A DNA stretch of 63,448 bases, filler included, from Octopus bimaculoides (Eukaryota): NCBI RefSeq assembly GCF_001194135.2. It is 4 parts of 4 records of this genome, joined end to end, with 100 filler letters (N's around TTAATTAATTAA, not from the genome) between each part and the next. Parts side by side here need not be neighbours in the genome. Positions count along the whole stretch, not along the records: positions 27,216 to 55,321 come from NC_068981.1; 3 more parts are not named here. The stretch is one strand, 5' to 3'. Below are positions 36,897-46,554 of the stretch, piece after piece. Position numbers and translations under genes: made by a program. Under the pieces are notes generated by a model. The model ran no database searches. It had not been told where the DNA came from and worked only from the letters and a program-made list of their open reading frames with translations. Numbering within the stretch: the first letter of the stretch is position 1; every line of letters begins with the position of its first letter.

Positions 36897-39466
36897 TTAG
36901 ATACAATTATAGAGCTGTTGTGACCAAACTTTTCCCGGACTGCATTTCAATGTAACAAAGTTATACCAGTTGGAACATTGAATATATTTGGTTGGATCTG
37001 GATGAGCGAAACGAGCTTTAAATAACTCCCTCGTGCATGGATTAGAATGAGGTGAATTCCCCCACACTACTTCATCACCATTATCCTTACTTGTTGTTTC
37101 CGGAAGTTGACTTGTTAATACATGATGTATTGAAGCACCGAATACGCAGTCCATCTCATGTTGGTTCCACACAGTCCCAGGAGAGCAGTTTCTTAGTACG
37201 TACGAACCCGGTACAGTGCACTGAATAAATTTTTTGGGGTCTGAATGTGCAAAGTAGCCAGTACCTGCTTCCAATGCTTCTGCTGTACATAAACTCTTAC
37301 CAGTGTTCATACCACCATACTCGTTTTGAATGATCGAGTGATGTGAATATCTATGTATGCATGTTTGATTTGCTTGTGACCACAGTGTACCATTGTCACA
37401 CGATTTAACAAAATATGTTCCATGGGTCGTACATTGAACATAATATTGAGGATCTGGGTGAGCAAAAAACATTACGTTTGCAGCAATTTTTTCTCTTGTA
37501 CAAGGGTTTTTAATTTTATTGAGCAGGGAAGGATTGTAAACTTTTAAAGTTGGGGTTTTGACTGTGGTTGAGACTGTAGATTTGACTGTCGTAGTTTTAG
37601 GTGTGCTCATCTGTTCTTCTCTTACGCATGTGAGATTTGCCTGTGACCATAAAGCTTGGCGATGACATTCTTTTATAATGTAAGATCCTGGGTTTGTACA
37701 CAGAATGAATTTATTGGGTTCAGGATGCGGAAAGTATTGACGATGTGATTCTAAATTCTCTTTAGTGCAATAAGTTTCAAATGTGTTTGAAGAAGCTCGT
37801 TTCACTGTACCATGCTTTGGGGAAGGTTTGAAAGTAGTTGTTTTCGTAGGTTTAGTAGATAGATCTTTGGACATATAAAGACATGTACGATTAGGTTGAA
37901 ACCATACAGCATCATTACCACATCGTTTTATATAATAATTTCCTCTTGATGTGCATAGAATAAACATTCGTGGATTAGGGTGACGGAAAAGAAACCTATT
38001 AGCGGCTATTGCTTTTTTCGTACAAGGGTTTTTGAAACGGGGAGGTAAAGTCATTCTAGATGTTCTTTGATTCACTTGGGAAGTTGAAAATGCTGGTGTT
38101 GTTATTGATGTTGTTGTAGCGGTAGTGGTCGGTTTTATTCGAGGTAGCGTTATTCTTGGCGGTATGCACTTCTTATCAGGTTGAGACCAAAAGAATAATT
38201 TTGGACAATCTCGCCTTACAAACTTTCCTGGGGCTATGCATTCAAAATACATAGTTGGGTATCGATGTGCAAAATATTTCAAGCCAGCAGCAATATTTTC
38301 TTTTGTACAGAAGCTACCGTCAAATTTATTGAAATATCTATCAAACTTCGATTTTCTTGTCATTACCATTCGCTCAGTATAGTGTTTCATTGCTTTCGTG
38401 TTGGGTTTATTTGCGGGTTTTGAGTGATAAGTAGGGGTTGCTTTCGCTGTTGCTATAGGAATGTCAGTAGACATTTTTGAGGTTGTATATCTTGGTTTGT
38501 TAGGAGGTTGGTCCCTTGATTTCTGTGTCTTTTTTGGTAGAGACCTTGCAGTTGTGTAATGCATCGGAATTTTTGATCTGCCGGACAAGGATGCTGTGTG
38601 ATGCAATTTTTCTTTCATAGTCGTCATGGGTAATGTAGCTGGCCTATTGAACGGATTGTCCTGCTTATTTGATGAATATATTGTAGAACCATAGATGTTT
38701 GTCAGATGCCTTCTAGTTGGCAAGTATTGAGTAGATGGATAATAATTATGTATACATGTATCACCTTTCTTTGACCAAAATTTACCAGAGTCGCACCTTC
38801 TAATGATATATAAACCCACACCTGTGCACTTGACATATTTCTTTGGGTCGGGATGAGAATAATAAAGACGTTTGGCTGCTATAGCAGCTTTGGTACAAAG
38901 ATGCTTAAATATGTTTACCAAAGGGTTTAGGGTAGTTTTTCCGGAGTTGTCGTGCAAAGTTGTCTTGAAAATCAAACTTCTATATTTCTGACGTAAATGC
39001 TCTGATGTATTTAAGCACATCGTTTCGTTCTGAAGCCAACTGTTTCCTGGGATACAATCTTTCACTATATATGAACCAATATCTACACACTGAATATATT
39101 TGGTAGGGTCAGAATGCGGAAAGTATAATCTTCCATTATCAAACGTTTCCTTCGTACAAGGATTAGCAAAAGACTTTAAAGCTGGCATTTTCATAGCGGG
39201 GCGAGTTTTCTTTGGTACCACGTTTTTATCCTTTTGAGTGGTTTCTGTATCGTCTTCTCGATGAACACAAGTCAATTTCTTTTGCACCCAGAATGTACCA
39301 TGCGGACAGCGTTTGACGTAGTAGTCTGATGACTTTAAGCATTGGATATACATCCTCGGATCAGGATGGGGTAAGGTTTTTGCATGGACACCGTCTGTTC
39401 TTTCACGACAAATAGTTTTCAAATACTGTTTATACAAAAGATTGTCTTTAGTAAATACTTCCGGGG
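36897..39466 (-). CDS. Exon 3 (terminal): nine tandem 4-Cys chitin-binding type-2 (CBM14/peritrophin-A)-like modules with Thr/Lys/Pro-rich linkers
   Basis: Acceptor tttattattttctttaaatttcag|CC (phase 1) and an uninterrupted 2570-nt frame to TAA. Nine repeats of consensus (NP)CT.E......YF.HPDP.KYIQC...G.Y.V..C..G..WSQ....C. The CBM14 assignment is from motif recognition, not an HMM search. The spliced product is 76+89+855 = 1020 aa. Confidence 0.9.
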
Positions 39467-39645
39467 CTGAAATTTAAAGAAAATAATAAAAATAAGAATA
39501 TATAGATGTAATTCATCATAGCTAAATATAGACAAGACTAATGTATAGGTATTTAGCAAAGAAAGTGAATAGCGTGTTAGTTGTTATAAACTATCATTTC
39601 CTGTATATGTATGTATGTGTGTGTGTGTGCATGTGTGTATTTCAT

Positions 39646-39850
39646 GGGATCGTAGTTTAGTGGTTAGGGTGTTGGTCGGGATATTGTAGGGGTGTGGTTT
39701 CAATTCCTGGATCGAATGATATTGTATGTTTTTGAGCAATACACTGTGCCTTACATTACTCTGCGATCATTTCGAAACCTGACGGATGGTACACAGTGCA
39801 CCTGTTCAAGCGACGTAAATTTGATGGAAGAAGTGAACTAATGAGTATCA
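39646..39850 (+). mobile_element. tRNA-head SINE in intron 2
   Basis: ggatcgtagtttagtggttagggtgttgg...ggtttcaattcctgg head followed by a ttgagcaatacact core. Confidence 0.6.
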
Positions 39851-40012
39851 CATATATTTCACCACTATAAACAAATGATTAATGCAGGTTTTTAATATAT
39901 ATATATATATATATATGAGTGCGTGTGTTTGTGTGTGCGTGAATATGCGTGAGTATGCACGCGCACGTGTCCTTGTAATTTAAGTTGATACTTAATGATA
40001 TTATTAATTCTT

Positions 40013-40395
40013 GGAGCCAAATTCCACCGAGGTCAACTTTGCCTTTCATCTTTTTGGGGGCGATTAAATTAAGTACCAGTTGCATACTAGGGTTGATCTA
40101 ATCGACTAGGCTCCTCACTCAAAATTTCAAGGTCGTGTGCCCTTGGTAGAAAGGATTATTAATTCTCCGCGTAAGGCGGCGAGCTAGCAGAACCATTATC
40201 ACACCGGTCAAAATGCTTGGCAGCATTTCGTTCGTCTTCATGTTCTGAGTTCAAGTTCCACCGTGGTCGGCTTTGCCTTTTATCCTTTCGGGGTCGATGA
40301 AAGAAGTAGCCATTGAACACTGGTGTCAATGCTGTTAACTTATCCCTCTCTCAGAACTTGCTGTCCTTTTGTCAAAATTTGAAACCATTATTATT
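40013..40395 (+). mobile_element. Two tandem ggcggcgagc-family SINE copies in intron 2
   Basis: Partial copy at 40013-40162 and near-complete copy at 40175-40395. Confidence 0.75.
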
Positions 40396-44709: not shown

Positions 44710-44923
44710 ATTCCTTTCTGTTATAGGTACAAAGCCTGAAATTTGGGAGAAGAGGATAGTCGATTACATCCAACCAGTATTCAACTGGTACTTAATTTGT
44801 ACAACTCGATAGGGTGAAAGGTAAAGTCGATCTCGGCGGAATTTGAACCAAGAACGTAACCACGGACGAAATACCGCTAACCATTTGGTTCATCGGACTA
44901 CCAATTCTGCCAGCTCGCCGCCT
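44710..44923 (-). mobile_element. ggcggcgagc-family SINE in intron 1
   Basis: Ends in ctgccagctcgccgcct on the plus strand; the body is complete. Confidence 0.8.
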
Positions 44924-45037
44924 CTATATATCATTTAATAATATATGCTCCATTTAAAGCGATTAAACCCATCTTTCTCAGTCAAATGTTTAGGTTTATT
45001 CGCTATAGAGAGAACATATATTATTAAATAATTACAG

Positions 45038-45080
<43 letters not shown>

Positions 45081-46326
45081 ATACAAATAATATGTGAGTA
45101 TATGCATATATACGTACATGTGCGTACATACCTACATCTACATGTATATATATATATGCATATCTGGGTACAGGACGTCACAAAAAACGTGGACAAAATT
45201 AAAAACAGAGCACGGAAAACACACAAGCCACATAGAGAACATTTTCTTCATCAGCTGCCACCATTCTACACTATGCGTTTCGAAGACTTAGGGCAGGACG
45301 CATTGCTAGGATGGCTCTTCCCGCGGAAACAAATTAAATGAAATTTGTAATGCGGAGGAATATAGTGGCGAACAGAAAACACGACAGGAAAACGAAACAG
45401 TGAAAAAAAACAAGAAGGGCTGTAAGGCCAGACGTGAAAAAAATATGTATACTGAACGCTGTGATGTGACGAACTTCAAAGGAAGAGAGAAGAAAGTCAC
45501 CTGGAAAATGTCTAAATACTAAAATTAAAAATTCCCTACCTACATTAGTATTAGCGGCCACAATAAACGTTGGAAAATACTAGCAATCACTTTTCGTTTC
45601 CAGGTCTGTGACACTTCTTGAGTTATTTCTACTGGTGACAAAGGGAATCTATTCTGTATCATCAAAGGATCAAATCACATGACCAGTATTCTCAAAAATA
45701 TGTTTAGTAATACTGGCAAGCATATTTCCTCAACAATAATTCTGTTGAATCTTTCAGTTTCAAATTCAAAGCGTATTAAATCCTTTCCTATTGTGTGCTC
45801 ACCTAAGATGAACGATTACACTACTACTATATCTTGGCATAACATCTCGTCTTTTAGTGTTTTCTTTGCCTTCAGTTTGAAGTATCGTATTTATCGTTCA
45901 ATTTAATCAACTCTGGAAGAAAAGAATATTATAAACGAGCAAAGGAAATTGAGCATGAGTAAGGAGTAGTACATCTATGAACCATTATATTTTGCTTAGA
46001 GTTGCATATTAGTATATTTTATGTAAGCTCTCAATGCTTTTGAGTATATTTTGAATACTTGCAGGCTCTCTCGCTCCCCTATCTCATTCACTTATTTAAA
46101 TACTTAAAACACGAAAAACATTTCTGAATATCAAAGAAACAGTGGAAGTGACAGAGAACGCTGTATTTCGAATCATGTAAAAAAGTGATTGTACAAATAA
46201 AAGGTCTTTGTTACCTTTCCATATTTCCACGAAAACTTACGCCTATATAAAAATTATTTTTATATACTGTACTGCATCTTAGATAACACTACAAAATGCT
46301 TGTAAAATAAATTGAATTTAACTTAC

Positions 46327-46554
46327 CCGCCATAGGCCACCACTATGAGGCTTAAATGGAACATCGTCCTTACTTTGAATGATAGCTAGTTTTCGCAGGA
46401 GGTGCTTATTCGAAAAAATTCCTTTGGTAGCCAGTTTATCAACAACGTCACTGACAACCTTATTGCCCATAGCTCCCATGGTCCTAATTCTTTCGGGAAA
46501 CTGTCCCGAACAAAATGGAATCAGTAGAAAATAAACACCAATAGGAAACTTCAT
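46327..46554 (-). CDS. Exon 1 (coding) of secreted multi-chitin-binding-domain protein; signal peptide
   Basis: ATG at 46554-46552 with an in-frame TAA 33 nt upstream. It translates MKFPIGVYFLLIPFCSG|QFPERIRT...GGLWR (hydrophobic signal-peptide-like start) and ends at a CGG|GTAAGT donor, phase 0. 228 nt. Confidence 0.8.

Follow-up and report, generated by a model that had tools for sequence, protein, structure and literature searches.

We identified, in the genome of Octopus bimaculoides, a gene for a 1,020-residue modular protein whose N-terminal domain is shown by profile comparison, at the level of sequence, to be homologous to a family of phage proteins, phrog_3108, and whose remaining length carries nine CBM14-type (peritrophin-A) modules of four cysteines each. 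The gene occupies positions 36,897 to 46,554 on the minus strand of the window, by which we mean the whole 63,448-nt stretch of DNA that was analysed (four parts of assembly GCF_001194135.2 joined end to end with filler), and lies in the part taken from NC_068981.1. New here are the identification of the N-terminal domain and its link to phages; the CBM14 part of the protein is ordinary. UniProt entry A0A0L8GW19 of the same species ("Chitin-binding type-2 domain-containing protein") matches it from end to end with 100% identity, and so an earlier note on this DNA, which had described three exons for a protein of about 1,020 residues, had rebuilt an existing gene prediction by eye. The view taken there that the protein is likely uncharacterised holds for the literature, where no paper on the gene was found, and does not hold for the public databases, in which the gene is already predicted and automatically annotated.

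With the N-terminal region (residues 18-183) as the query, 1.84 billion representative proteins were scanned in full with HMMER, and 208 homologues of the domain were found at E ≤ 1e-3. The domain is about 135-150 residues long, is all-helical in the AlphaFold2 model (mean predicted local distance difference test score, pLDDT, 80), and has the consensus ...G..VV.AV..I..SGIFP.D..FLRRIAYVES.DG...(Y)..GGIWQVD...F..T...L...I...FGIDW..V.W.DLRKPLYSGLAARLYL....IP...QA.YWK..YN. Most members are proteins of 160-250 residues in which the domain begins within about 60 residues of the N-terminus. Short members are found in corals (Acropora, Montipora, Orbicella), sea stars (Acanthaster, Patiria) and an annelid (Owenia), all of them named "uncharacterized", and in gastropods (Haliotis, Patella, Littorina), octopods and one mite the domain occurs in longer proteins together with VWA domains, four-cysteine CBM14 modules or both. 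None of 62 members matched a Pfam model at E ≤ 10, and neither the domain nor its phage homologues gave a usable match in Pfam, NCBIfam or the PDB sequences. The earlier note had seen about 155 residues here without a recognised motif. A Pfam model is indeed lacking; the region is nevertheless a conserved domain, of a family that has no such model and that is related to phrog_3108.

The connection to phages came from a scan of the PHROGs collection, in which 61 of the 62 family members sampled matched phrog_3108, a family without an annotated function (best E = 2e-21). Named animal proteins from chromosome-scale contigs matched it at E = 1e-15 to 1e-20. When a profile of 32 fused mollusc domains, with the octopus domain first, was aligned by hhalign to a set of six phage proteins, the match extended over 159 columns with a probability of 99.1% (E = 1.3e-18), and it is through this profile that homology of the octopus domain is shown. 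In Salmonella phage PMBT28 (locus L004, 46661-48111) the homologue AUZ95556 is encoded directly upstream of a holin (phrog_785, E = 7e-27) and an Rz-like spanin (phrog_89), and no other annotated endolysin was found in that genome. In Klebsiella phage phiKO2 (locus L002, 2522-3944) the homologue Gp54 lies, as read by eye, between Gp53, which has several apparent membrane spans, and the overlapping Gp55 and Gp56, in a region downstream of an annotated late promoter. Perhaps phrog_3108 is a type of endolysin that has gone unrecognised.

The domain also weakly resembles goose-type lysozyme, a member of glycoside hydrolase family 23 (GH23). The goose lysozyme sequence that we used was checked against PDB entry 153L (full-length match, E = 1.6e-126). 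Its alignment to the family is collinear over about 140 columns and pairs VES with RES (which holds the catalytic Glu73), GGIWQVD with GLMQVD, and QAxYWKxHY with ARAQYYKQHGY. Among the viral models of BFVD, the top three matches to the AlphaFold2 model of the domain had template-modelling (TM) scores of 0.58-0.67 (two unnamed proteins and one uncharacterised phage protein), with proteins named "Putative endolysin", "GEWL-like" and "LT_GEWL" lower down the list. Taken singly these lines are weak, and all have the same direction; the modelled domain probably has a fold of the lysozyme superfamily. Hen (C-type) and T4 lysozymes were tried as templates and rejected (E = 0.24-0.78).

The putative catalytic glutamate is distributed unequally over the family. 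It is present in 165 of 183 domains from short proteins (≤260 residues) as compared to 13 of 33 from proteins with CBM14 modules, and the position is occupied by Gln60 in the octopus protein and by Arg in Argonauta. With Gln60 in place of Glu, the octopus domain would more likely hold a glycan of the N-acetylglucosamine (GlcNAc) type than cut it; if the fold assignment is right, the domain is probably a non-catalytic glycan holder. We tentatively propose, as a possibility that falls somewhat short of an even chance, that the animal proteins form an undescribed family that shares ancestry, by descent or by horizontal transfer, with phrog_3108 as a phage family of endolysin-type, GH23-like muramidases. 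The short members, most of which keep the glutamate, could then be a new class of invertebrate lysozyme or chitinase, and the mollusc fusions to CBM14 and VWA, which have often lost it, would be glycan-holding pseudoenzymes.

Several results weigh against the phage and lysozyme links. On the phage side, the octopus domain alone gave no direct match to phrog_3108, the neighbours of the homologue in Vibrio and Pseudoalteromonas phages include no obvious holin, and the endolysin slot that the family would fill in the PMBT28 lysis cassette is assigned from gene order only. On the lysozyme side, hhalign aligned the family to goose lysozyme at E = 0.008-0.024 with a probability of 2-5%, and a phage-only profile at E = 0.004 with a probability of 9%. 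The observed score of 23.2 compares with 13.6 ± 3.3 over 60 shuffles (z about 2.9), and one of the 60 shuffles reached it. Pfam gave no SLT match for the octopus domain or for the family, and the best PDB fold match to the AlphaFold2 domain model in Foldseek, the GH23 chitinase 3W6D of Ralstonia, had E = 1.1 and a TM score of 0.32-0.35.

A small set of octopod paralogues from O. vulgaris, O. sinensis and Argonauta hians (P0008, P0010, P0011 and P0014) share this N-terminal head domain. One has two head domains and two CBM14 modules, one has the head domain and VWA domains, and short forms have one to three CBM14 modules. P0014 shares an Argonauta contig with the orthologue of the gene described here, and P0008 shares an O. 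vulgaris contig with P0005, a fragment of the orthologue. The octopus head domain contains a C-x7-C pair (SCQQNLRDLC; residues 89 and 97, encoded in 40857-41121) that recurs in the fused mollusc forms and is absent from the family consensus; it may form a lineage-specific disulfide. A protein of the mite Halotydeus destructor (P0016, 1,616 residues, named "Collagen alpha-1(XXI) chain") carries the head domain at residues 626-756 together with VWA domains, and the combination of the two is thus not confined to molluscs.

The rest of the protein is built from nine repeats of the form C-x22-C-x10-C-x12-C, with x19 in the last, each with exactly four cysteines. Pairwise identity between the modules is only 24-39%, and the residues invariant over the nine copies are the four Cys together with a His, a Pro and a Trp. 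Repetition of the modules at the DNA level was considered and rejected, as Tandem Repeats Finder (TRF) detected only intronic microsatellites. The earlier note had assigned the repeats, with their four cysteines and invariant Trp, to CBM14 and had proposed an HMM search and a comparison of a single repeat with tachycitin and the chitotriosidase CBM14, and the assignment is borne out in each respect. The Pfam model CBM_14 (PF01607; SMART ChtBD2) scored 112.2 bits (E = 1.2e-32; cut-off 22.1) with seven separate stretches, and a profile of the nine repeats found the mite allergens Der p 23 (4ZCE, E = 5e-4) and Der f 23 among the PDB sequences. A word-indexed search with the nine-repeat alignment, a query too short for it, gave no match. 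The CBM14 fold consists of an N-terminal sheet of three strands and a C-terminal sheet of two. An AlphaFold2 model of module R7 has five strands (pLDDT 84), and the 13 best PDB matches to this predicted structure are all of CBM14 type (probability 0.72-1.00). They include Der p 23 (4ZCE; root-mean-square deviation, rmsd, 1.0 Å, 31% identity) and the Aplysia protein EHEP (rmsd 0.8 Å, 29% identity), and the model also superposes on the CBM14 of human chitotriosidase, Avr4, Blo t 12 and tachycitin (5HBF and 6SO0 among the PDB entries).

The canonical CBM14 domain has six cysteines spaced C1-x15-C2-x5-C3-x9-C4-x12-C5-x5-9-C6 and paired C1-C3, C2-C6 and C4-C5 (PMC10619976), and none of the nine modules has the full set. 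The spacing of the octopus repeats fits C1, C3, C4 and C5. Where C2 would stand, six residues before C3, all nine have Pro, and the C6 position is empty, which argues for the coherent loss of one disulfide, C2-C6. Each module would hold the remaining two, C1-C3 and C4-C5. The note had recognised the absence of these two normally paired cysteines, and had called the result a coherent reduced variant; the loss is coherent, and it is no speciality of this gene. The four-cysteine form is not new: Der p 23, which counts as a member of the CBM14 family, has the same one, and related molluscan proteins have it as a rule. Among 59 related gastropod and octopod modules C2 is present in none, a C6-like Cys is rare, and Pro is the commonest residue at the C2 position (16/59). 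In Argonauta this Pro is replaced in three of nine repeats. The Trp, which marks the aromatic site between C4 and C5, and the His are invariant in 18/18 repeats of octopus and Argonauta.

The mature protein has a mass of about 115 kDa and is basic, with an isoelectric point (pI) of about 9.6. Its N-terminus, MKFPIGVYFLLIPFCSG/QF (the slash marking the putative end of the segment), looks like a signal peptide by eye, as had been noted before, and the protein would be secreted. The linkers between modules are rich in Thr, Pro, Lys and Ser and are probably O-glycosylated, and the central 148-residue linker is probably disordered and mucin-like. The orthologue in O. sinensis (XP_036359009.1, 1,034 residues) is 92.5% identical, its sole length difference being a 14-residue Thr run in the R4-R5 linker, and that in Argonauta hians (GAB1597859.1, 1,038 residues) is 60% identical. 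Against Argonauta, the synonymous divergence (dS) is about 1.6 in all parts, and the ratio of nonsynonymous to synonymous divergence (dN/dS) is 0.078 for the repeats, as against 0.20 for the N-terminal region and 0.24 for the linkers, which shows purifying selection on the gene. The repeats of the two species are orthologous one-to-one (60-94% identity), and the nine-module array is therefore older than the octopus-argonaut split and strongly constrained. The Argonauta eggcase proteome paper was considered as a source for this protein and rejected, as the protein reported there differs, with three ChtBD2 domains and laminin G3. In the NCBI annotation of another O. bimaculoides assembly the gene is split at the Thr-rich R4-R5 linker into partial proteins of 626 and 385 residues. 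A break of the NCBI models at this place suggests that the linker region varies in length or is difficult to assemble.

On balance we think it probable that the gene encodes a secreted modular protein that acts as a multivalent, non-catalytic binder of chitin, or of a related GlcNAc polymer, and organises matrix or mucus. The signal peptide would direct the protein to secretion, and the N-terminal domain, as a GH23-like pseudoenzyme, would hold a GlcNAc-type glycan. The nine two-disulfide CBM14 modules, with their His and Trp, would bind a chitin-type polymer multivalently and, spaced on the Thr/Pro/Lys/Ser-rich linkers, would tie fibrils together in an extracellular matrix or a layer of mucus, an action akin to that of insect peritrophins and peritrophic-matrix mucins. 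The analysis shows how the gene is built, which domains it encodes, that it is under purifying selection and that its N-terminal domain has phage homologues; that the protein is secreted, how its disulfides pair, the lysozyme-like fold, the lost catalysis, chitin as the ligand and the tissue are parts of this reading that we infer. Two points count against it. Literature searches with the gene and protein accessions found no paper and no expression, tissue or protein data, and a search on octopus sucker chitin-binding proteins found nothing. Moreover, the fold does not settle the ligand, because two proteins among the nearest solved relatives of the modules, Der p 23 and the EHEP of Aplysia, are reported not to bind chitin; chitotriosidase, Avr4 and tachycitin do bind it, and residues critical for the binding of chitin vary across the family (PMC10619976).

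A different ligand is thus the first alternative to be weighed. The CBM14 fold could serve to bind polyphenols, haem, another glycan or a protein, and the octopus protein would then be a secreted scavenger or adaptor. EHEP, which takes phlorotannin, and Der p 23 provide the precedents for a CBM14 protein without chitin binding, they are among the best structural matches to the octopus module (rmsd 0.8-1.0 Å, 29-31% identity), and the variability of the chitin-binding residues across the family would be consistent with such a change. Against this stand the Trp and His, which have not varied in any octopus or Argonauta repeat, and the repeated combination of the module with VWA and the lysozyme-like domain, as in matrix proteins. 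Octopuses are carnivores, and the phlorotannin role cannot be transferred to them. We consider a non-chitin ligand unlikely.

Less likely again is a role as a mucosal immune or antimicrobial lectin, in which the lysozyme-like domain would see peptidoglycan and the CBM14 array the chitin of fungi or parasites, so that microbes would be agglutinated or trapped in mucus. The model for such a protein is tachycitin, which combines chitin binding with antimicrobial activity and is itself among the fold matches. Homology of the N-terminal domain to a phage lysis-cassette family, the basic character of the protein (pI 9.6) and its mucin-like linkers are all in keeping with this role, and the small stand-alone members that keep the Glu in many marine invertebrates would fit an antibacterial enzyme. 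The octopus domain, however, is without the putative catalytic Glu, and many modules on long linkers, here nine, are more typical of structural peritrophins.

The chitin-binding organiser that we favour presupposes the three-exon gene model, and this model is well supported. The exon junctions were read directly off the sequence, and the spliced coding sequence of 3,063 nt translates to 1,020 residues with a single terminal stop and none internal (Table 1). The model of the earlier note agrees with this reading, with the translation and with A0A0L8GW19, and its GT-AG splice sites and phases of 0 and 1 were confirmed at all junctions read. An open reading frame (ORF) of 846 codons on the minus strand (36897-39437), in DNA of 37% GC, together with the repeat dN/dS of 0.078 against Argonauta, excludes a chance ORF. 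The piece of the window that holds the gene was scanned in six frames with both domain profiles; only the three exons matched, and a further copy of the gene or an exon missed by the model was rejected for this piece. An exact search for the 1,020-residue protein on contigs gave no record. Pfam gave no match for three other ORFs in the piece, and AATAAA motifs 3' of the stop were discarded as evidence, since they are too frequent in AT-rich DNA.

The same piece contains four runs of N, two of which (42830-42878 and 44178-44446) fall within the gene, both in intron 1. As both border on arrays of (GT)n, (AC)n and (TA)n detected by TRF, the gaps are microsatellites that the assembly did not resolve. 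Dinucleotide microsatellites crowd intron 1 (42228-42307, 42879-42945, 44137-44177, 44449-44615 and 45040-45080), and each gap begins or finishes in one. Intron 1 measures 5.2 kb here, with gap lengths that are estimates, and no coding signal was found in it; its counterpart is 4.3 kb long in Argonauta and about 16.5 kb long in O. sinensis. The profile of the N-terminal domain, derived from uninterrupted homologues, is covered without a break, by exon 1 over profile positions 1-62 and by exon 2 over 60-150, and the most conserved motif of the family, GG[IL]W[QR][VI]D, arises only on joining the two exons, as GGLWR/ID. At the A. hians locus the corresponding exons are also 228 and 265 nt long, with equal phases, GT-AG sites and no N, and at the O. 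sinensis locus tblastn found the same three coding blocks, again with no N. Given the contiguous profile, the rebuilt motif and the N-free orthologous loci, no coding exon is hidden in the gaps. That the model is wrong or the gene unexpressed (a mis-joined prediction, an exon missing in the two gaps or a pseudogene), as the partial NCBI models of 626 and 385 residues might suggest, is hardly credible when the ORF is intact with dN/dS of 0.08-0.24, exon lengths, phases and splice sites are identical in Argonauta and the blocks the same in O. sinensis, the domain profile and its motif run across the exon 1/2 junction, and the two partial models jointly cover the same protein with their break in the Thr-rich linker.

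Table 1. Features of the gene in window coordinates. A slash marks a splice junction; residues (aa) are numbered from the initiator Met.
Feature	Position	Strand	Remarks
Coding exon 1	46327..46554	-	228 nt; ends phase 0, ...GGCGG/GTAAGT
ATG start codon	46554-46552	-	exon 1, sequence read
Signal-peptide-like segment, aa 1-17	46554-46504	-	exon 1; read by eye
N-terminal domain, first part	46327-46503	-	exon 1; domain profile positions 1-62
Gln60	46377-46375	-	conserved Glu position of the family
Intron 1 (GT...AG)	41122..46326	-	holds both assembly gaps
Coding exon 2	40857..41121	-	265 nt; starts TTCTTCAG/ATT, ends phase 1, ...CTAA/GTGAGT
N-terminal domain, second part	40857..41121	-	exon 2; domain profile positions 60-150
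Intron 2 (GTGAGT...TTTCAG)	39467..40856	-	sequence read
Coding exon 3	36897..39466	-	starts AATTTCAG/CC; all nine CBM14-type modules and linkers
Module R1, aa 184-231	39267..39410	-	four Cys
Module R2, aa 268-315	39015..39158	-	four Cys
Module R3, aa 355-402	38754..38897	-	four Cys
Central linker, 148 aa, aa 403-550	38310..38753	-	Cys-free; pI 10.4; Thr-, Lys-, Pro-, Ser-rich
Module R4, aa 551-598	38166..38309	-	four Cys
Thr-rich R4-R5 linker, aa 599-645	38025..38165	-	14 aa longer in O. sinensis
Module R5, aa 646-693	37881..38024	-	four Cys
Module R6, aa 731-778	37626..37769	-	four Cys
Module R7, aa 820-867	37359..37502	-	module modelled for structure
Module R8, aa 891-938	37146..37289	-	best Pfam CBM_14 stretch
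Module R9, aa 975-1019, C-x19-C	36903..37037	-	CSNW... segment most Der p 23-like
Stop codon TAA	36899-36897	-	end of exon 3

Outside the gene, a plus-strand ORF of 132 residues (48538-48936) lies by an 808-N gap. Read by eye, it resembles the C-terminal tail of the reverse transcriptase of retrotransposons without long terminal repeats (non-LTR); it has no Pfam match.

The two-disulfide CBM14 domain emerges from this analysis as a standard module of a molluscan protein family, a result that bears on which CBM14 domains truly bind chitin. The N-terminal region links a family without a Pfam model, widespread among marine invertebrates, to a family from a phage lysis cassette with motifs like those of goose lysozyme. 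Should the stand-alone animal proteins prove active, they would represent a new type of invertebrate lysozyme or chitinase, and if the phage members are endolysins, a PHROG without annotation would gain a function. The octopus protein itself is a candidate organiser of cephalopod chitinous structures such as the beak, radula, stylets, or sucker or gut cuticle.

Of the known systems, the closest to the modules are Der p 23 and Der f 23 (4ZCE, 5ZJL), which have the same four cysteines (C1, C3, C4 and C5), Pro at C2 and no C6. Der p 23 is the best match both by sequence profile and by fold, and differs in being a single module beside a short Thr/Pro-rich region in a protein of mite faecal pellets, whereas the octopus protein has nine modules and a lysozyme-like domain. 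Insect peritrophins and peritrophic-matrix mucins such as AeIMUC1, the architecture of which is described in PMC10619976, likewise combine a signal peptide with tandem CBM14 modules and Thr/Pro-rich mucin-like linkers, a design that in both suggests multivalent binding in a chitin matrix. They belong to another phylum and the likeness implies no orthology, their modules canonically have six cysteines and three disulfides, and an N-terminal domain like a phage lysis protein is not described for them. EHEP of Aplysia kurodai (8IN3, 8IN6) is a secreted tandem peritrophin-A protein of a mollusc, one domain of which superposes on the octopus module as given above. Unlike the octopus protein, it has three six-cysteine domains arranged in a triangle and lacks such an N-terminal domain, and it binds phlorotannin and not chitin (PMC10619976). 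The Pif/BMSP shell-matrix proteins, defined by VWA and one or more chitin-binding domains, often with laminin-G remnants (PMC11291548), resemble in architecture the gastropod and octopod relatives of the N-terminal domain, a domain that PMC11291548 appears not to describe. Pfam found only CBM_14 in the 1,020-residue octopus protein, with no VWA and no laminin-G, and for want of a VWA domain the protein is not a Pif/BMSP member.

For the N-terminal domain, the nearest enzymes would be goose egg-white lysozyme (GEWL, 153L) and other GH23 enzymes (3W6D), which share three collinear motifs with the family, including [VI]E[ST], with which a helix ends, and GGIWQVD, aligned to GLMQVD. The enzymes have a catalytic Glu in the last part of the helix before the G-x-x-Q-V-D loop, where octopus has Gln and Argonauta Arg. 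The phage proteins of phrog_3108 (phiKO2 Gp54 and PMBT28 AUZ95556), homologous to the octopus domain by profile comparison, are stand-alone proteins of about 160 residues with neither a signal peptide nor an annotated function, whereas the octopus domain is split by an intron and fused to CBM14 modules.

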